From NCBI GenBank assembly GCA_965637545.1, contig OZ281501.1, positions 3,348,001-3,412,000 of the forward strand: 64,000 nucleotides of DNA, written 5' to 3'. Made by a program: the position numbers and the translations under genes. The stretch is from Phallusia mammillata. Taxonomy: Eukaryota. Within the stretch, counting starts at the first letter, position 1. The number at the start of each line of letters is the position of its first letter. The notes beneath the pieces are model-generated. The model ran no database searches. It was not told the DNA's origin and worked only from the letters and a program-made list of their open reading frames with translations. Positions 1 to 11,580 of this stretch are shown piece after piece.

Positions 1-694
1 ATCCATTTTTAGTGAACTGCGTGATTTTTTTGCTGTGTTGATATCGCAGTGTAAATATCAAGCAACAAAAAATAGTTACGTTTTTATTCTGTGGCAACCA
101 CGTTCATCACGGACATTTAGCTGACCATACAACCGCAAAAGGTGATTGATGATTAAGGAGGATTTTCTTTATGAGCTTGCCAATGATTCCGCGTATTTTA
201 AAATCACGAGATTTTCCAATGTGGTGAAACACTTCGAATTTGACCATATGACTTGAGCTGTGGTTTACCTGTTAGATCGTTGCAATAGGCAATATTATAA
301 ATGGCATAACAGCAAGTTACACAGTTTTAGATAAAGCTTGCAATTAAAGAACTTTGGTTTAAATTGATTTGTAAAAGAAATGCAAGGCAAATTTCAAAAG
401 ACAACAGTTAAAGTTAGTTTGAAAGTTTTTCATTGACTTTGCATTGAAAAGATGGCCAAATGCGGTATAAAGCGAGATAAACATTTTTTTTCTTATTTTC
501 CAAACGCTATATCGTAATATGCAAACAAATTTTAGTTTTTCTTAAAGGGAGTAATGCTTTGATTGCAGGCCTAAAACCACCAATTACAAATTTAACTTAA
601 ATAACAAAAGTGTAATATGGCTTTAGAGCGGTGTAGGTAACATTTTTGTAGTAGCGGAGACATTTAACCAAAACTTTTGCTCTGAATCCCTGAG

Positions 695-863
695 CAGTGT
701 TTGTTTAAGGTGTTTTGGGGGACCGTTTCTCGTTTTGGGGGACCGAAATTTGGACTTGCAATTCGTTTAAGCAAATATGGCTATTTTTTGGTATTTAAAA
801 AAACACTTGCGGTATCTTAAAACTACTTAGCGATCACCCAAACCAAACCTTAAACAAAACCTG
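695..863. mobile_element. hAT-type MITE
   Basis: Imperfect TIRs CAGTGTTTGTTTAAGG / CCTTAAACAAAACCTG; perfect 8-bp TSD TCCCTGAG at 687-694 and 864-871. Confidence 0.85.
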
Positions 864-2862
864 TCCCTGAGCATAAAATTATTCAAGTAGTTCTGTAAAA
901 ATTCTGATTAAAATGCTTTATTTGTTTTCCCGAACAAAAACCATGACGCTACTAAAGATTTTGAAAATCAGCTACTCAAAAACGAAAAATGCGTTTGGTA
1001 CACAAAGAATTCAAGGTACAAGTATGTTAATATATTTTTAGCTAACTAGTTCCGGCCTGCCATAAATTTATTGAAATATTTTTTCTTATCAGACAATGTA
1101 ATTAAAAGTTTCTCCGGCTGTCCATTAGAGAAAGATTGATTGATGACCAGCATACCATGCCATCGCCCTAGAAAGAGTGCATTGTTAAACCGCCTTGTTA
1201 TTGATTGCTTACTAAACGGTTATGTACACATTAAAACATTAATTCCGGACAATAGCGTTGAGTTTGCCATTTTGTTGCAGACATATGCTATGCGCCCACT
1301 GCACGTAACCGCAAACATGTATGACGGAGGCAGTTCCTCTTTTAATAAATTTATCACACAGTCAGCTACGAGATCAAGCGTCCACCGCTTAGCGAATTAC
1401 GTCAGTCAATGTGGACACTATTGATGTTTGTCAGGTTGCGCCACTGACCTCGATAAAATTTGTACAGCGATTACCAATGTTTTGCATTGCGCGCGAACTA
1501 GCACTGATTTGCACGCGAAATTATTAGTTCAGTAGCAATATTTGTCCACAGATGTAAAAGGCGGTCTTGAAAAAGAGAGAATAAGCTAACGAAGCCCTTA
1601 TAGTGTGTACATTGGATTCAAGTTGGTTGAATCAGTGCATATATAAGATGGCTTTCGTCAGGGGGTAGCTCATTCTAATTTTTTATCTTGTGTGTACATT
1701 ATAACCACATAGTCAATTTGATATTTTGTCGTTTTAAATTAGTTATATTTGCCCTTGGAATCGTTTGTGTGGAGTTTCATCTAATTAAGGATGTATTTTG
1801 CATTTCTCCAAATTTAGCGGTTCCTCAAAATGGACTCTTGTGGATTTCTCCTAGTTATTACGGTACGATTTTTTTCATTTTGCCCATAGCTTGCTCTGTG
1901 AAAATTACTGTAGGTTGGTAATTTATTTATGTGTTTAATAAAGGTGATAAATTTCGCACAAACTGCGGTTTGCCAACGTTAAAGTTTATTCTCAGCCCAA
2001 TGCAAAACATCCAGTTCAGGGGAAGATTAGGCATTTCATTAGTTTGAAAATGTCATTCGTAACGTTATATCAGTGACCGTTACGTTGAAAACGTTGCTTT
2101 TGTAAGTGCACCAATTTCTCATTAGTTTTTTACTATGGCAAAACAGGATTTGTAACGTTATAAATAGTTTTCACCTATAAGGATTTCAGATGTCCTATCA
2201 TCAGGGGTAGGGAACCGCTGGCATGTGTGCCAATGTTGACGAGCGAGGTGATAATTTATGACATACTCAGTGATTCGGATGGGCGTTTTCGCATGTCTAA
2301 AAATAATTTGACCTATTACAACTTTTGCTTTGGTGTAGCAATCCTGAAACGCTACCTTACCAGCAATTGTTCAAAACAGCTAAAACAAAAATGCTTAAAA
2401 GGAGAAGCGACTATTATTTTGACAGTACAGCAAGCTAAGTGTTCTTTCTCATCAGTTTGTGATTGTTACAAAACGGTTCCAGTAAGGTTAAAAAATAGTT
2501 ACCAGAAAAGTATTTTGAATAACATACCAGTAACATACAACTGTATTTGCGATGCCCGGCATATACCAATAGTTTCTATAGCAACGGCATGACAAATATT
2601 CCAAGTATTAGGCGAGAATGTCAAATTTGTTATAGGAGCAAACAACTGATAGTTTGGGACTTTTGCAGGGACTGAAGATTATGAAGTGATCTGCAAACAA
2701 TATTATCGATATCCCATTGTTTGTCCAGTCATACCTGTTGGCCCCCAGAGCGCTTGAAATTACCATCAAGTTCACACTAGAAAAAATATAGTTTTAATTT
2801 TATTTTATTTTTGTACACAAACATTGTTTCTATTTCAGTCACTGTACTGAATCAGTATGGCT

Positions 2863-2919
2863 TGGTGACTGGCAGATTCAGAAATAACGCCTTCAATGGG
2901 CCTGGCGTACTGTGATTTA
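2863..2919 (+). repeat. SINE core fragment (family also at 4549, 5258 and 11581)
   Basis: TGGTGACTGGCAGATTCAG..CGCCTTCAATGGGCCTGGCGTACTGTGATTTA closely matches 11590-11645 and the reverse complement of 5258-5312. Confidence 0.7.
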
Positions 2920-3126
2920 TGAGTGTGTTATGATCGCTGGTCTGCATAGAGACGCTTCAGGGCTGATCCCAGTTATGAATTTAGGTTCATCCTAATTGTT
3001 TCTATTAATTACGATTGTCAAAATTTATTTTGGTTGCAACGTTTTCTAACTACCTGCACCAAGTGAAACATCTAAAAAGGGGCACATCCAAGTTATTTAT
3101 CGAAAAAATACCCATATTGTTTAGCC

Positions 3127-3334
3127 CAGTGGTCGGCACGCGACAAAATCGTTACCGGGCCGTATCATTTTTCAGGTTAAATGCTTTAAAACATTTTGGC
3201 CATGTGTCCCGGGGATGATAAATAAATTTATGCGTTTTTATTGTTAAGTATTTGTAGTTTTTTGAAGGCCGGTCCGCGATAAAGAAATTAGTTTCAAAAA
3301 CGGTCCGCAGTAGAAGAAAGGTTGCCGGCCTCTG
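3127..3334. mobile_element. hAT (Charlie/Buster-like) MITE
   Basis: Ends CAGTGGTCGGCA / TGCCGGCCTCTG; perfect 8-bp TSD GTTTAGCC at 3119-3126 and 3335-3342. Confidence 0.85.
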
Positions 3335-3449
3335 GTTTAGCCCATACAACTAATATTTAATTTGCCCCCGCAGCATGTTCTTTACTCTTTAAACAATGAT
3401 TTCAAGTGGGTAATTAATTAAAAGTTATCCTGGCTCAAATTTAAGTGCT

Positions 3450-4140
3450 TCACCCGATATGTCTGAGGTTACATCGCGGTTAAAATAAGGAGTGAAAGTG
3501 TTTTACGGCAAACCGGTTGGCGCCATACCAATACTCCCCGCAAGCTACTAAGTCAACCGAAAGATTCAAACAGTACCTTTAAACAACGAGGTGTTGTATA
3601 TTCTATTCACTGCGCCGAGTGTCCGTTGATATATATCGGGGAGGCTGCATGGAAGGTCACTCAACACCTGTTAAAAGAACATCAACGGGATGTTGCCAAC
3701 AACGACGCGAAGAACTGGAAAAGACTATTTCTTAAGTTATGGAATATTCACCAACCGGGCAACACAATGAACATCAAAGCAGAAGTGATGCTTTCACGCT
3801 CAGTGTATTCGTTGTGTTGTGACGTGCTTGTGTTCCATTCTTTTTTCCTTTGTTTCTCGTGTTATCTTTTTTCGTCTACCCCTGAGCAAGTACAGCTATA
3901 AATTCATTTTCGTCAAAAACTTACTAATCTGATTTTATATTGTGTTCTGATACAAATAGTAAATGGTTTGTCAATTCTAAAATCGTCTAAATCCTAATTG
4001 TGTAACAACTGCTTTACTAAGTGTTATTTACCCAGTGTTAGTGTTATTTACCCTGATGCATTCAGTGTTATTCACCCTGATGAAGGCGATCTGTATAAGA
4101 CGTCGAAACATCGGAATAAAATCACATTTGCCAGAAGAGC
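3450..4140 (+). mobile_element. Penelope-like retroelement 3' relic (degenerate GIY-YIG endonuclease plus hammerhead-bearing terminal repeat)
   Basis: Frame from 3542 reads KLLSQPKD..QRGVVYSIHCAECPLIYIGE..LLKEHQRDV..WKRLFL..TMN, the Penelope GIY-YIG pattern GVVY-x-I-x-C-xx-C-xxx-YIGE..KEH; a CTGATGA..GAAAC hammerhead core follows at 4077-4112. The 5' boundary is approximate. Confidence 0.8.
4065..4120 (+). ncRNA. minimal type I hammerhead ribozyme (Penelope-type), probably impaired
   Basis: CTGATGA 4077-4083, stem II GGCG..CGTC, GAAAC 4105-4109, then ATC instead of GTC (C-A mismatch in stem III). Confidence 0.65.
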
Positions 4141-4398
4141 AACAGTTTATTTATGAAAGTGTTGTGCGGACAACAAACCAAAATACGTCATGGCCAAACG
4201 TTAACAGACCACCGGTCTATTGTGATGTAATGTTGAAAAAAATATCGTATGTTCTATTTGGGAATACGGTCTCATCTTTTGAATTATCGCTACCTCATAG
4301 AGAGAAAATCAAGCAAAAAGATACATTATTGCTTTTACAAAGACCTAAATCTTCTTACCTTTGGTTAAGCACGTTTCATCACATACATTTCACCGACC

Positions 4399-4443
4399 AT
4401 GAAATCGTTGTGCGCGTTGCTCTTTGGACAATACTTGTCACTG
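4399..4443 (+). CDS. candidate exon 1 (signal peptide N-part, MKSLCALLFGQYLSL) of secreted beta-trefoil/IL-1-like gene A
   Basis: ACC-ATG context, hydrophobic 15 codons, phase-0 GT donor (weak, CTG|GTTTTC) with an in-frame stop just after; joins the phase-0 acceptor at 6167 to give a continuous signal peptide ..LSL-VFVFLSNFITNTSG|RS. Confidence 0.5.
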
Positions 4444-4548
4444 GTTTTCACATAAAAAAACTTCAGACGTGTCTTTGCATTGGAAATGGTAATTGTCTAA
4501 AAATGTGTACACAAAGATGCCAATAGTTATTTTGAATGTAAGAGCGCA

Positions 4549-4600
4549 TGGTGACCGGCTTATTTGGTGTGACACATTCACTAGGCCTGGCGTGCTTTGA
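4549..4600 (+). repeat. diverged SINE core fragment
   Basis: TGGTGACCGGCTTATTTGGT..AGGCCTGGCGTGCTTTGAT similar to the 2863 and 11590 copies. Confidence 0.55.
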
Positions 4601-5257
4601 TAGTTTTTTTCAAGTTGTCATTAAAACAAGGTTGACTAGATGAGAATTTAAGTGAAGAGGGAAAGTGTTTTTGTTTTCATAGAGATAAGACTAAAGGGCT
4701 TTTGCTTAAGTGAAGGAGGCGTACTAATAGGTTTTGGCACGCATTCAAACCTGAATTGCAATTTTCATCTAAATAAACAAAAAATTTTTTTACAGTATCG
4801 CAAAGAATTGTTTCAGAAATTGCTTTTCGGAACAGAAACTGAACCGAACTTCTAACTAAGTTTTTTTAAATTTATTCTAACAGGCCATTCTAAGTAAAAT
4901 GGATACATGGGGATTTCTCCTGATTTTAATGGTACGAAAACACATACATTTTGCCTTGTTCGCTGGGTCCAAATCAGTCTTCGGGCTGTTTCATGTGCTT
5001 AAAGACGAAATATATCACTAACAACTTGCTGGTTTGTTACCTGTAGCTCCACACGCCTTTCCTTAACACAAGCGGTTATTATTTGTTCTTCGATCCAGCA
5101 GTAGTGTTTGCACAGTACGTCAAACCAACTTGAGTTTCCTGTATTGCCCTTGGTTTTTGCGCTCCACGACATTCAAACATTTGTCGTCTTTTTAGACTGA
5201 ATGATTGCTGCAATTCTATTAGTTTTTCACAATCGAAAATACTCAACTTATCAAAGA

Positions 5258-5420
5258 ACGCCAAGCCGATTGAAGGCGTTATACCGAATCAGTCGGTCAC
5301 CGAGCATTCACCACCATATGGAAAAACGTATAGGCTAGAAAATCCAGCCTGTGGTGGGATTCGAATCCAAGACAGGAGTCTTTTCAGGACTCGCGCTCTG
5401 CCAACTGATCTACACGACTC
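5258..5420 (-). mobile_element. tRNA-derived SINE (head plus core)
   Basis: Minus strand: A box TAGATCAGTTGG (5412-5401), B box GGATTCGAATCCC (5368-5356), followed by the core repeated at 2863, 4549 and 11581. Confidence 0.7.
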
Positions 5421-5460
5421 AGTGGAGAACCCGCCTTATGTTGAATCACAAGCATCGTTG

Positions 5461-5828
5461 CAGTGGCGTAGGCAGCCAAAAATTTTGGGAGGGGCCAAAT
5501 TTTTTGTTGTCTCGCACATCTTTTTGCTAACGCTCGGCGTGCTTTTACCAAAATCGTGAAACTGTGCCAGACTGTGGTTCGACGGGACAGCCTAACGCTT
5601 TATTGATTTATTTCATGTCTGCATAAATAAAAAAGCATGGATGACAAAAGTCAATGACAAAAAATGACAAAAGTCATTTTTGGTAATAAATATTTTCCTT
5701 TGTCAGTTGAGAGACAAAACCACAATGGACAGGGACGAAACTACTCTAAATTAAAGTTTATCAATGTATAACTTTGAAAATTTGGTAGGGGCCATGTCCC
5801 TTTTTGCCCCTCCTTGGCTACGCCACTG
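5461..5828. mobile_element. MITE with CAGTGGCGTAG termini
   Basis: TIR CAGTGGCGTAG / CTACGCCACTG with GC-rich subterminal GGGGCC/GCCCC blocks; TSD not clean. Confidence 0.7.
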
Positions 5829-6166
5829 TACCGTTACTGTACCGTTGCCTGCCTCGTATATGCTGCACATGTCAGCATGTTTTCTATCTAACGATGCCGT
5901 GATCGCTTGTCTGCATCGAAGCTTCAGGGCTGATCCCAGCTATTCATCTAAGTCTTAAACTCAACTTATATTAACTGTATTTGCTTTTGTGTTGGTTTTT
6001 AGGAATACATAATTAGCTATTTGTAACGTTTTATTGCTCTTCGAAAATGAATCCTAATTACCGTTTGCATTAAACAACCTAAAGAAGTGCTGAATTATAT
6101 CAGATAGGTCAAAAATGATTTTTATGGTTACTAAATGTGTAAGATAATCTTACTCTTATTTTGTAG

Positions 6167-6673
6167 GTTTTTGTCTTCCTGTCAAACTTCATAACCAACA
6201 CATCTGGCCGGAGTATTTGCAAAAAAGTGGTCACTGTACAGTGTTATGATCTAGATGGCCAAACCTTGGGAAAGAAAGGAAAAATACTTAAGATGGTAGT
6301 AGCTACAGAACCTGTGAAATTCCGAATGTGGACATACCCTGAAGTTGACCCGGAAGCGTTTGTTCTAGAGCATAGAAATGGAAAAGTTTTAAACCTAACA
6401 CGCAAAACGCGAAAACGACCACAATTTTTGACACTGTCTAAAAATGGAAGCAAACCGGAAAACTTTAGTCCCGGCGATAAACGTTTTTTCAAAAATCATT
6501 ACGATCCTTTAAATGAGAAAACATATCTTATGCCTTGGCATCAAACAAAAAATAATACCTATTTCCAATGTCGTTTAAGACGTTCTTATGTACCTGAGTT
6601 AAGAGCAGGCTACAAACAAAACAGGACAATGGGTGTATACACTAAACAAACAAACGACACGCAATGCAACTGA
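6167..6673 (+). CDS. main coding exon of gene A: secreted basic beta-trefoil protein, IL-1-family-like (about 183 aa, 154 aa mature)
   Basis: Acceptor TTATTTTGTAG|, 168 open codons; begins with signal-peptide end VFVFLSNFITNTSG; strand pattern VQCYDLDGQTL / VKFRMWTY / FVLEHRNGKVLNL / FLTL / DKRFF / TYLMP / TYFQC parallels IL-1b CTLRDSQQKSL / VVFSM / VALGLK..LYL / LQL / EKRFVF / EFES / WYIST; six N-glycosylation sequons. Confidence 0.65.
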   Translation, partial: VFVFLSNFITNTSGRSICKKVVTVQCYDLDGQTLGKKGKILKMVVATEPVKFRMWTYPEVDPEAFVLEHRNGKVLNLTRKTRKRPQFLTLSKNGSKPENFSPGDKRFFKNHYDPLNEKTYLMPWHQTKNNTYFQCRLRRSYVPELRAGYKQNRTMGVYTKQTNDTQCN

Positions 6674-6724
6674 TCACGTTAGTTTAACCGCTGTGTGGCG
6701 CTACCGATGTGCTAAGCCACACTA

Positions 6725-6975
6725 GCTACCGTCTGGGGCGCCTGACCCATATACAGACATAAAAAACCTGATCGGGATTCGTCCCCGGGAGAGTCCTGGG
6801 TTCGAACCCCGTGAAAACAAAAAAACAAACAAAAAAGAGGTAGTAAAGTCGCGGGCAGAAACTTGGCCGAATGGTCTGTCGCGCCTGACCGACATTCAGA
6901 CATAAAAACTTGTTCTGGATTCGTCCCTGGAAGTGTCCTGGGATCGAACCCCGCAAAAAAGAGGGAGTAAAGTCC
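6725..6975 (+). repeat. tandem dimer of a tRNA(Leu/Ser)-derived SINE-like unit
   Basis: Two roughly 125-bp units sharing GCGCCTGACC..CAGACATAAAAA..GGATTCGTCCC..GTCCTGGG(T/A)TCGAACCCCG, an A-rich tract and GAGG.AGTAAAGTC; A box TGGCCGAATGGT in unit 2. Confidence 0.7.
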
Positions 6976-8422
6976 CAAAAGGAGTTGAATCTTTATGTCA
7001 TACATAGGTTTTTTACATGTAAGTTATACATTTGCAGTTTAATCGTGTTTTCTAATTATATGTAAATATCACCCTTGTTCGACATTTATTTTAAACGTCC
7101 ATGCCCTATTTTTGCAGTTTTACAACTTTCGTAACTCACGTTTTAGCCATTTTCCTCATTTCACCTCCTGTTCAATTTTCTGCTTGTATATGCAACGATT
7201 ACTGTGTCGATTGGGGCCAATCTTTAGTCGAATTGTGTCAATAAAATTGTTTTTAGGTCTCTCTTTTGGAGTTTTGCTTAATGTTATACCTCATCTGTAT
7301 GAATAACTAATAACCCACTATTGTACATGTGTGCTATGGTTAATACCCTTATGTTTTCGAACCAGCAATTTGTTTATTTTTATCCCTAAATAGTAAGCAA
7401 CTTTAATTACTTCCAAAATGTACATACATATTTAATGTATCGTAAACATGCTTGCAATCAGTATCAAGTACTGCTTACTAAAACAGTCATTTTTAACAGG
7501 AATTTTTTTTATTAGTGATGTACCAAATATTTGTTTTGCCAAATTTATTCGGTAAAATCAGCAAATTTTTATCAAGATTTGGTTTCGGTACAAATCTAAT
7601 TAAACCGATTTGGTGTATCACTAGTTTTTACAGCCAAAAATGAGCAGTTTTGGGGCGTCCAGTTTAACCGTACTTTATGCTTTTTCCTTTTTTAATCGAC
7701 TGTATAAACAATGACTAGCTACAAGATCGGATCTTGTGTCTATAATTAAATATTAATGCTGGTGCGATGGCCTTATATCATTTTTTACGAACAAGTGCTT
7801 GAATTTTCGTCGGGCCTACCATGGCGAGCCTTGCGGATATCTGAGTGGGTATGGTGCACTGTGGTCTAAACTAGATAGATTTCGCTGTGGTGGGATCAGG
7901 CTGTACGTTTTTTGATCTGGCTACATGGAAATGATAGCGACAACAGCGTAATTTGGTATCATACTCTTTGTTATTGCAAATGTAAAATATAACACATATC
8001 CGAACAAAAGTATTCGCCATAGGGTCAAAGCATTTTTTACTAAAGATATGTTATGTTTTAACTAACATTTACAAGCGGTTAGTAAAAAAACTACAAATTT
8101 CGCACTGGCTGCGTATAAGTACAGAATTGCAGCATGTTAGTGTATTCTTTCGTAATTGGATGTTCCAACCTGTATTTTTAGCCAGCCGAAACTGTTTTCT
8201 TATTCTTTTCTCAAAAATGAAAAGTTCAGCGACAATGCATTTCCCCTGGGGGACAATGGTTTTTTACCCCACATGCCTTAGTGTGAGTCATTTTACTTTC
8301 GCTTCCTGATCAACACAAACCCACTGAGGTCATACCAACAGCGATAGCAGCAAAGCACAAAAATAGTGCAAGTATCCTCAATTTTGTGAATACAGATCGA
8401 ATGATATATACAATACTTGTAC

Positions 8423-10740: not shown

Positions 10741-11516
10741 TCAAGCTAGATCCACGTCCCACATATCAACTCCCGAATGGTGTTCTGTCAAAACCAGCTT
10801 TGATTCGTTGCCCAGTGCAACTGAGAGTAAGGTTCCTGATCGATTATTCCACGTAGAGCTGGGATGAAGAAACCCGAAACTTGCTCCACCTGTCCGCGTC
10901 ACATTGAGGACAAAAAGCCGGGGATCGCTGGTGTCAGAGTCGACGTCCACGTCCAGAGGGTCGCCCCATTTGCGTTCCGGTGACAATTTGATTTCTTGGC
11001 TGTCGGTATCACAGACAACGTATTTACGCTTTGAACGTACTGTAACAGCAAACATAAACGTGAGTGGAAATCCTGGCCTGGTTGAGCCAAATTGCCATCG
11101 TATGATAGGGTTTCCGCCATCGACTATTCGGAGTCCCCCTTGTGCCCCCCAGTGCCTGCCAAGCGTGGCGTGTCGAACGTAGCAATCTCTTTCTTCTGAG
11201 ACCCCGGCTTCTAATTCACAAGCGTGAGTTAGGGTGACCGGAGTTTCGCAGACTGGCGAGCCTATGAAGTTCTGCAGAAAATCGGTAAAGTGTTGCGTAA
11301 CCTTGCACTTTTCGCGAGGTTTTGGACTCGTGGATTTTGTTTCTGTTTCATCACTGGTCGCCTTTAGATTCATTTTCTTCATATCGGCCACGCCCGAGTA
11401 ACGCCGCACCGTCTGTTTTACGGATTCCTCTTCAATTATAAAACTTCGTCCGTTTTCGGTTTTAGTCTCTAATCCACAATTTGCACGGGTCGCGAGTTGT
11501 TCTGTCTCGAGTTTGA
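10741..11516 (-). CDS. exon 2 of gene B: leaderless precursor with C-terminal IL-1-family-like beta-trefoil (272 aa in total)
   Basis: Longest ORF in the window; minus-strand acceptor TTTATATTTTTCAG| phase 1; C-terminal ~147 aa shows CYVRH, GFPLTFMFAV..KYVVC, EIKL, DPRLFVL, FLHP, LLSV-x7-LVL, DMWDV, paralleling IL-1b/IL-18 strands. Confidence 0.75.
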
Positions 11517-11580
11517 CTGAAAAATATAAATAAACAAACTTGAGCATGTGTTTATCACGGCACGCTCATAAATATAAATT

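Follow-up and report, generated by a model that had tools for sequence, protein, structure and literature searches.

A candidate gene for a secreted beta-trefoil protein within a three-member family of the sea squirt Phallusia mammillata

The DNA discussed here, which we call the window, is a stretch of 64,000 nucleotides (nt) from the sea squirt Phallusia mammillata (GenBank assembly GCA_965637545.1, contig OZ281501.1, positions 3,348,001 to 3,412,000 of the forward strand). It holds a probable gene whose main coding exon is predicted to carry a complete beta-trefoil domain and which an initial annotation had read as coding for a secreted IL-1-like ligand or antagonist, or an IL-1/FGF intermediate. 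Two short exons that could supply its start lie upstream of the main exon. Two paralogues of the main exon are found further upstream on the same contig, and a second predicted trefoil gene, gene B, lies downstream. This work will focus on what the main-exon gene encodes, on whether its product takes the secretory route, and on how far its likeness to the cytokine trefoils goes.

The main exon stays open until its TGA stop, although all 20,000 mononucleotide shuffles of it contain stops and none remains open. A strong acceptor (ttactcttattttgtag) stands directly 5' of it, the final G of which is the base before 6167, and because the acceptor's TAG (6164-6166) is in frame the start of the exon is fixed at 6167. 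Translation finds no in-frame ATG ahead of M42, and the start must therefore come from a coding exon further upstream, in phase 0. The translation begins with a hydrophobic run, VFVFLS, just as first described; like the initial annotation, we would read this run as the end of a signal peptide. The first 14 codons would then contain the end of its hydrophobic core and its c-region, with small residues (T and G) at -3 and -1 ahead of R15. These mark the predicted cleavage site under the -3/-1 rule for signal peptides.

Counting bears out the other features first listed for this exon, namely a 154-residue mature part with six N-x-S/T sequons, four cysteines and the basic patch RKTRKR. The whole exon has seven sequons, at N11, N76, N93, N99, N129, N152 and N163, and all but N11 fall in the predicted mature part. 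Composition shuffles of the whole exon give a mean of 1.68 (P = 0.0003), and for the mature part alone six sequons stand against 1.29 expected (P 0.00015). The cysteines are residues 18, 26, 135 and 167. The protein has an isoelectric point (pI) of 9.95, with 30 lysines and arginines against 13 acidic residues and a net charge of +17.

Table 1. Features of the main-exon gene and its neighbour, in window coordinates
Feature	Position	Strand	Remarks
Main coding exon	6167-6673	+	168 codons and TGA; whole predicted trefoil domain inside
First 14 codons (VFVFLSNFITNTSG)	6167-6208	+	Predicted end of hydrophobic core and c-region of a signal peptide
Predicted mature protein	6209-6670	+	154 residues, pI about 10
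RKTRKR basic patch	6401-6418	+	Residues 79-84; inside an insertion of 6 residues that the paralogues lack
Mini-exon 1b	4899-4931	+	ATG and 10 codons (MDTWGFLLILM), phase 0; best first-exon candidate
Mini-exon 1a	1830-1862	+	MDSCGFLLVIT, phase 0, donor GTACGA; sister of 1b, possible alternative first exon
Predicted intron	4932-6166	+	GT..AG, 1235 nt, splice predicted; high-copy repeats at about 5200-6000
First exon of the initial annotation (MKSLCALLFGQYLSL)	4399-4443	+	Donor CTG/GTTTTC; not favoured
Gene B	10744-11547	-	Same 50-kilobase (kb) cluster; three-member family

A six-frame search of the animal's own 240-megabase (Mb) genome with the main-exon protein finds two paralogues on the same contig and strand. 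The first, 28 kb upstream, matches at E 1.3e-10 with 38% identity across residues 19-124; the second, 10 kb upstream, matches at E 4.2e-5 with 35% identity. The reciprocal genome search with the first paralogue returns the same three loci only, again at E 1.3e-10, and a local hmmsearch of 104 kb of six-frame pieces finds no further trefoil exon. Identity is 69% between the two paralogues and 30-34% between either of them and the main-exon copy; when that copy is compared with them, 10 residues are missing from its last third. The three genes make up a family that has been seen in the Phallusia mammillata genome alone.

In each paralogue the domain begins at an ATG, which lies about 50 nt after a pyrimidine tract and CAG, and an AATAAA overlaps the stop codon. 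Neither has a sequon, they have one cysteine and none, and their pI values are 10.0 and 9.5. Since all three copies have a pI of 9.5-10, basic charge is a family-wide property, and it is the sequons and cysteines that are special to the main-exon copy. The basic character that the initial annotation singled out is therefore real, but it does not set this copy apart. We believe the sequon enrichment is the strongest internal sign in this exon, and it points to passage of the main-exon copy through the endoplasmic reticulum (ER), unlike the paralogues. The family also appears to evolve fast: the ratio of non-synonymous to synonymous substitution rates (dN/dS) between the two paralogues is 0.53, at a dS of 0.35. 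Many secreted recognition and immune proteins evolve fast.

The required upstream exon was sought by listing all phase-0 candidates that run from an ATG to a GT within window positions 1-6166 (n = 106). The best of these is mini-exon 1b, whose ATG has the Kozak context aaaATGg and a pyrimidine tract with AG 15 nt to its 5' side, and whose donor is GTACGA at 4932-4937. Mini-exon 1a resembles it closely; in either of them the ATG is flanked by A at -3 and G at +4, and a pyrimidine tract with AG lies 12-15 nt upstream. Placed in register, the two are identical at 33 of 43 bases over exon and donor; ten flanking windows of equal size give 7-20 of 43. Their differences are synonymous or keep the residue hydrophobic. 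A pattern that covers both occurs at two sites in the window and at none in 100 shuffles of it. The whole 240-Mb genome has four sites, all on the + strand in the cluster, and none for a reversed-pattern control. Two of these copies lie ahead of the main exon and two lie further upstream, by about 18 kb for 1a and 16 kb for 1b, and all four are in phase with 6167. We read this as a short exon, coding for Met-Asp and a hydrophobic stretch, that is probably under purifying selection. When the pieces are read separately, an uncharged run of eight residues (WGFLLILM) closes the mini-exon and one of five (VFVFL) opens the main exon, where it is followed by SNFITNTSG. Side by side, the mini-exon and the start of the main exon would look like a signal peptide, some 25 residues long, in front of a 154-residue mature protein.

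The initial annotation had proposed a different first exon, at 4399-4443. The donor of that exon has T at +3 and +5 and scores -4.8 bits on a generic donor matrix; because the donor is poor we believe this exon is probably wrong. It has no support of its own, and its conservation does not go beyond that of the duplicated block around it, described below, which is 88% identical. Other candidates, for example 4517-4537 (MPIVILN, donor GTAAGA), have no support of their own. An open reading frame (ORF) between the two mini-exons, at 2164-2589, was rejected as an exon, as it is not open in the other duplicated unit. Mini-exon 1b is most likely the better choice.

The history of the locus bears on this choice. 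BLASTN finds window positions -267 to 6142 collinear with C8:3329093-3338475 at 84-95% identity, and from 3338476 on the collinearity is with the region upstream of the first paralogue. This reads as a single tandem duplication, about 20 kb long (G000:C8:3318341-3354142, that is, up to window position 6142), along whose unit the identity goes from 78% to 95%. The unit consists of a trefoil paralogue and the block with the predicted signal-peptide mini-exons, and its right end stops 24 nt short of the acceptor at 6166. The order before duplication reads as paralogue, mini-exon block, main exon. Together with the position of the right end, this order would make the mini-exon block the native 5' part of the main-exon gene.

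The same duplication has a consequence for the second paralogue (C8:3344051; L003:1436-1950). The two more distant mini-exon copies (L014, C8:3337215-3337247, and L017, C8:3331469-3331501) stand 6.8 and 12.5 kb ahead of it, and the 17 codons between its acceptor and its ATG are open in phase 0. Given these open codons and the mini-exon copies upstream, it is possible that the second paralogue could also yield a secreted isoform. No mini-exon like 1a or 1b was found upstream of the first paralogue. The duplication has put a copy of the putative signal-peptide mini-exons ahead of an apparently leaderless paralogue, which may be a conversion to the secretory route in progress.

The fold of the product was approached with AlphaFold2 models of the main exon and of the first paralogue, built on an alignment of the three paralogues only. 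Both models are all-beta. With the first-paralogue model, all Foldseek rows shown are chains of IL-18, FGF, IL-1beta or IL-37 or else designed trefoils (best E 8.7e-3, TM-score 0.46). With the main-exon model the leading rows are ryanodine-receptor N-terminal domains, chicken IL-1beta, IL-1Ra, FGF18 and IL-36gamma (best E 3.4e-2). VIA-align, run against 48,161 chains, places the main-exon model nearest to IL-1Ra (Z 7.5, root-mean-square deviation 3.6, 106 residues aligned), IL-1beta (7.3), FGF12 (7.2) and a fungal trefoil lectin (7.2), with FGF8b, FGF19 and FGF18 also among the top rows; for the first-paralogue model FGF21 and IL-1alpha come top at Z 8.0 each. The other rows shown in the structure searches are lectins, fascin, toxin domains and inhibitors, which we would class as trefoil proteins as well.

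Models without a clear match typically reach a best Z of 7-8, so the fold argument rests on the uniformity of the lists. The ESM Atlas adds to this uniformity for the first paralogue, whose ten best named clusters (scores 0.91-0.93) are RicinB_lectin_2, Fascin, FRG1/FGF, Inhibitor_I66, CCL2-like and Inhibitor_I48, families that we would all place in the beta-trefoil group. For the main exon the best Atlas score was 0.89, with no consistent family. The trefoil proposed at the outset is thus upheld by lists that are nearly all beta-trefoils, and it is the best-supported fold for the main-exon protein, at low confidence. The matches to these models do not separate one kind of trefoil from another: IL-1, FGF and lectins are tied at Z 7.0-7.5, and lectin, fascin and toxin trefoils come within 0.5 Z of the cytokines for the main-exon model.

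The explanation we lean towards, with moderate confidence, is that the gene has two exons, that its product is a basic beta-trefoil which is N-glycosylated and secreted, and that within a fast-evolving family of three this is the gene that takes the secretory route. The observations under it are the open exon, the paralogy, the contrast in sequons and cysteines, and the conserved in-phase mini-exon. The splice, the processing, the secretion and the target are steps that we infer, as follows. The start codon and the beginning of the signal peptide would come from a short first exon (most likely 1b, with 1a as a possible alternative); the main exon would add the remainder and a complete beta-trefoil of about 150 residues. 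The product would enter the ER, be cleaved at about G14/R15 of the main exon and be N-glycosylated at up to six sites, and it would probably be held by disulfide staples, for which Cys18/Cys167 and Cys26/Cys135 are the candidates. It would then be secreted and serve as an extracellular basic binding protein. Anionic glycans, or a cell-surface partner bearing them, would be the most likely target; we favour them because of the RKTRKR insertion or loop and the net charge. The secretory character that the initial annotation proposed is supported by the hydrophobic start of the main exon, the conserved in-phase mini-exon, the sequons and the extra cysteines; its link to the IL-1 or FGF ligands is not supported, as will be seen.

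It is important to set out what weighs against this explanation. Both models are poor: the main-exon model has a predicted local distance difference test score (pLDDT) of 48.9 and a predicted TM-score (pTM) of 0.52, and the first-paralogue model has 54.6 and 0.56. No Foldseek match reaches an E of 0.001 and no VIA-align Z of the main-exon model reaches 8. At the level of the gene, the mini-exon donor GTACGA differs from the textbook donor, and beyond the stop codon the + strand first shows an AATAAA at 7240, 567 nt away. The opening residues of the main exon (FL.NFI...C) weakly resemble an internal stretch of gene B that is not a signal peptide (BLASTP E 0.86). None of 12 sequencing runs guessed to be RNA contains any main-exon word. 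Lastly, both allelic differences in the main exon, at window positions 6463 and 6549 in two DNA runs, are non-synonymous; they are N99K, which removes an NFS sequon, and K128T. In our reading of the sequence such alleles fit fast evolution, but they also fit relaxed constraint.

The run data come from one search that listed 14 runs, two containing the main exon and the 12 guessed RNA runs. The two contain 78% of the main-exon words, with contigs unbroken over 5948-6760 and 4138-4448. Since these contigs continue through the intron, the acceptor and the donor at 4443, both runs are genomic DNA. When two of the guessed RNA runs were mapped, only repeats at about 2800-4200, 5200-6000 and 6600-7000 were covered, and they gave no splice information. 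These run data neither support nor refute transcription of the main exon. The repeats in those three intervals are of very high copy number, and contig depth there exceeds that of the flanks 100- to 1000-fold, and the 3' flank of the main exon enters one of them. Repeats at about 5280-5400 and 6700-6900 have ends like those of transfer RNA (tRNA), with ggttcgaa. ARAGORN scans for tRNA and scans with Rfam and Pfam called nothing in the intron and the repeat ORFs.

Unlikely, though deserving the most attention among the alternatives, is a gene that is not secretory at all. It would begin with some other upstream exon, for example one coding for a pro-domain such as gene B has, or with a trans-spliced leader and an internal ATG, and its product would be leaderless. 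Such a gene would resemble both paralogues, whose domains open with their own ATG after a similar acceptor, and would agree with the alignment of the FL.NFI...C stretch to an internal piece of gene B; there are, besides the two mini-exons, 104 further phase-0 candidates from ATG to GT upstream, and no junction was observed. What speaks for the secretory gene instead is the sequon enrichment of the whole exon together with its four cysteines, compared with no sequons and at most one cysteine in the paralogues, and the conserved hydrophobic mini-exon with its ATG, in phase and directly upstream. A start at M42 would also remove the first strands of the domain.

We think it rather unlikely, a shade more so, that the main exon is an old paralogue which lost its own ATG, ceased to be expressed and is now silent or recently dead. 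The 168 codons remain open at 30-34% identity to the paralogues, although not one of the 20,000 shuffles does, and we infer selection from this because a frame that long would not outlast such divergence unselected. The gain of seven sequons is also unlike decay. A dead copy would nevertheless account for a main exon that is in no RNA run and has no ATG at the domain start, and it would sit well with the gap in the last third, the two non-synonymous polymorphisms out of two, and the repeat in the 3' flank.

If the two-exon secretory gene is accepted, the kind of trefoil it encodes can be asked separately. Pfam matches the main exon to no family at E <= 10, including IL1 (PF00340) and FGF (PF00167), and gene B and the paralogues are likewise without a match, at E <= 10 or <= 1. 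Searches of the Protein Data Bank (PDB), by sequence with the protein and by profile with the family, return chance rows only (E 0.72-1.9) and no trefoil. Looking further afield, in a set of 5.8 billion proteins none scored among the candidates drawn with the main exon (12), a paralogue (5) and the family profile (544). An exhaustive phmmer search of 1.84 billion representatives gives one match, P0001, with an E of 2.8e-7 summed over 6 repeats. P0001 is a bacterial-looking surface repeat protein of 1800 residues, matched at residues 671-777 and in five other repeats, and it shares with the family two short motifs at similar spacing, V.CYD..G..LG and F..GD.YF.T.H. We do not count it as a homologue, given that the likeness consists of two short motifs, that the alignment crosses a repeat boundary and that hhalign with the family profile gives it a probability of 24%; it is probably a match at the level of motifs only.

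A secreted trefoil of another kind, a sugar-binding lectin or a protein of the protease-inhibitor type with a role in defence, seems doubtful to us. Trefoils of these kinds tie with the cytokines in VIA-align for both models, they are the nearest named Atlas clusters of the paralogue (RicinB_lectin_2, Inhibitor_I66, CCL2-like and I48), and a family that is tandemly duplicated, fast-evolving and limited to this genome would suit a defence protein. Yet no Pfam lectin or inhibitor family matches the main exon, the paralogues are apparently leaderless, and the translation has no Q-x-W. The Q-x-W repeat is the motif of the ricin-B or lectin type of trefoil.

The proposal that this is a true, very divergent member of the IL-1 family, or of the FGF family, pairs a secreted ligand or antagonist with a leaderless, IL-18-like gene B. 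It has a real attraction, and we nonetheless judge it improbable. The top structural rows are IL-1Ra and IL-1beta for the main-exon model and IL-18, FGF and IL-1alpha for the paralogue, and six predicted trefoil genes of two families stand within 50 kb. Vertebrate IL-1 genes are clustered in such a way. The initial annotation had stated that only IL-1Ra among IL-1 family members has an isoform with a signal peptide. That statement is outdated because the IL-1.1 of lamprey and hagfish also bears a classical signal peptide, according to a 2026 survey (PMC13736523), so that members with signal peptides do exist. The same survey reports IL-1 homologues across many invertebrates, though not for tunicates, with no candidate in Ciona intestinalis, Botryllus schlosseri or Styela clava; it uses an (F/L)ES motif, and neither FES nor LES occurs in our 168-residue translation.

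The profile evidence also goes against membership. Across the genome the FGF profile has 17 matches, 13 of them above the cut-off, at about six loci on contigs C1, C2, C4, C5 and C7, and none on contig C8. The FGF loci are split into two or three pieces each, compared with a main-exon trefoil that lies entirely in one exon. The IL1 profile finds no match in the genome, and since it is also silent in 14 control genomes this search has little power. Set beside the lectin, fascin and toxin trefoils that score almost as well as the cytokines, these results leave the IL-1 or FGF reading as a likeness of the modelled fold and of export logic, membership not being shown. None of the tests shows the main-exon protein to be an IL-1 or FGF cytokine.

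Gene B itself lies 4 kb from the main-exon gene, tail to tail with it. Its own paralogues, L012 (C8:3310441-3310923, - strand) and L013 (C8:3316511-3317008, + strand), were found at E 7.6e-9 and 4.1e-7 at the left end of the cluster. Like the main-exon family, the gene B family has D-x-R-x-F followed by L-x-P at similar spacing; gene B differs from the main-exon gene in having a long N-terminal extension and no leader. The initial annotation had pointed to these shared motifs and had looked to a profile alignment for their confirmation. D104-x-R106-x-F108 and L121-x-P123 of the main exon do align with DPRLF and LHP of gene B, but statistical support is missing: BLASTP of the two gives the E of 0.86 already mentioned, and hhalign of the two family profiles gives a probability of 0.5% and an E of 0.12. 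Judged from the alignment, the columns are real, yet alone they are no evidence of kinship. The boldest view of the cluster, in which its 50 kb would be the sea squirt's missing IL-1-type system, grown too divergent for sequence searches to detect, we regard as very improbable. In that view the gene B family and both paralogues of the main-exon gene would be leaderless agonists, and the main-exon copy, with its signal peptide and glycans, would be a classically secreted antagonist or decoy evolved in parallel to IL-1Ra.

We believe the cluster matters even so. It gives concrete genes to test against the tunicate gap in IL-1 that the 2026 survey presents (PMC13736523). Within one small trefoil family there is a copy with a split predicted signal peptide and a heavy gain of sequons, and there are copies with neither. 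As far as the sequences go, the new details are the predicted signal-peptide copy beside leaderless copies in one family and the duplication of the mini-exon. Such a family would be a compact natural case for the conversion of a leaderless trefoil to the classical secretory route.

The comparison with known systems comes down to this parallel in export. The main-exon protein differs from IL-1Ra and from the IL-1.1 of lamprey and hagfish in having no sequence or profile similarity to them, in lacking (F/L)ES and in having its trefoil in one exon, and the Z of its low-confidence model against IL-1Ra is not above that of unrelated trefoils. What it would share with the secreted isoform of IL-1Ra and with these IL-1.1 proteins is a beta-trefoil of about 150 residues behind a signal peptide, predicted in our case, in a family otherwise made up of leaderless members. 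From the secreted FGFs, which bind heparin and are glycosylated, it differs in exon structure and in that the Pfam FGF profile misses it while matching the canonical FGF genes elsewhere in the genome. The likeness there is of basic trefoils with a basic cluster, in a family of leaderless and secreted members, secretion being predicted for ours. The predicted division between exported and leaderless copies in this small family parallels the one found in both the IL-1 and the FGF families.

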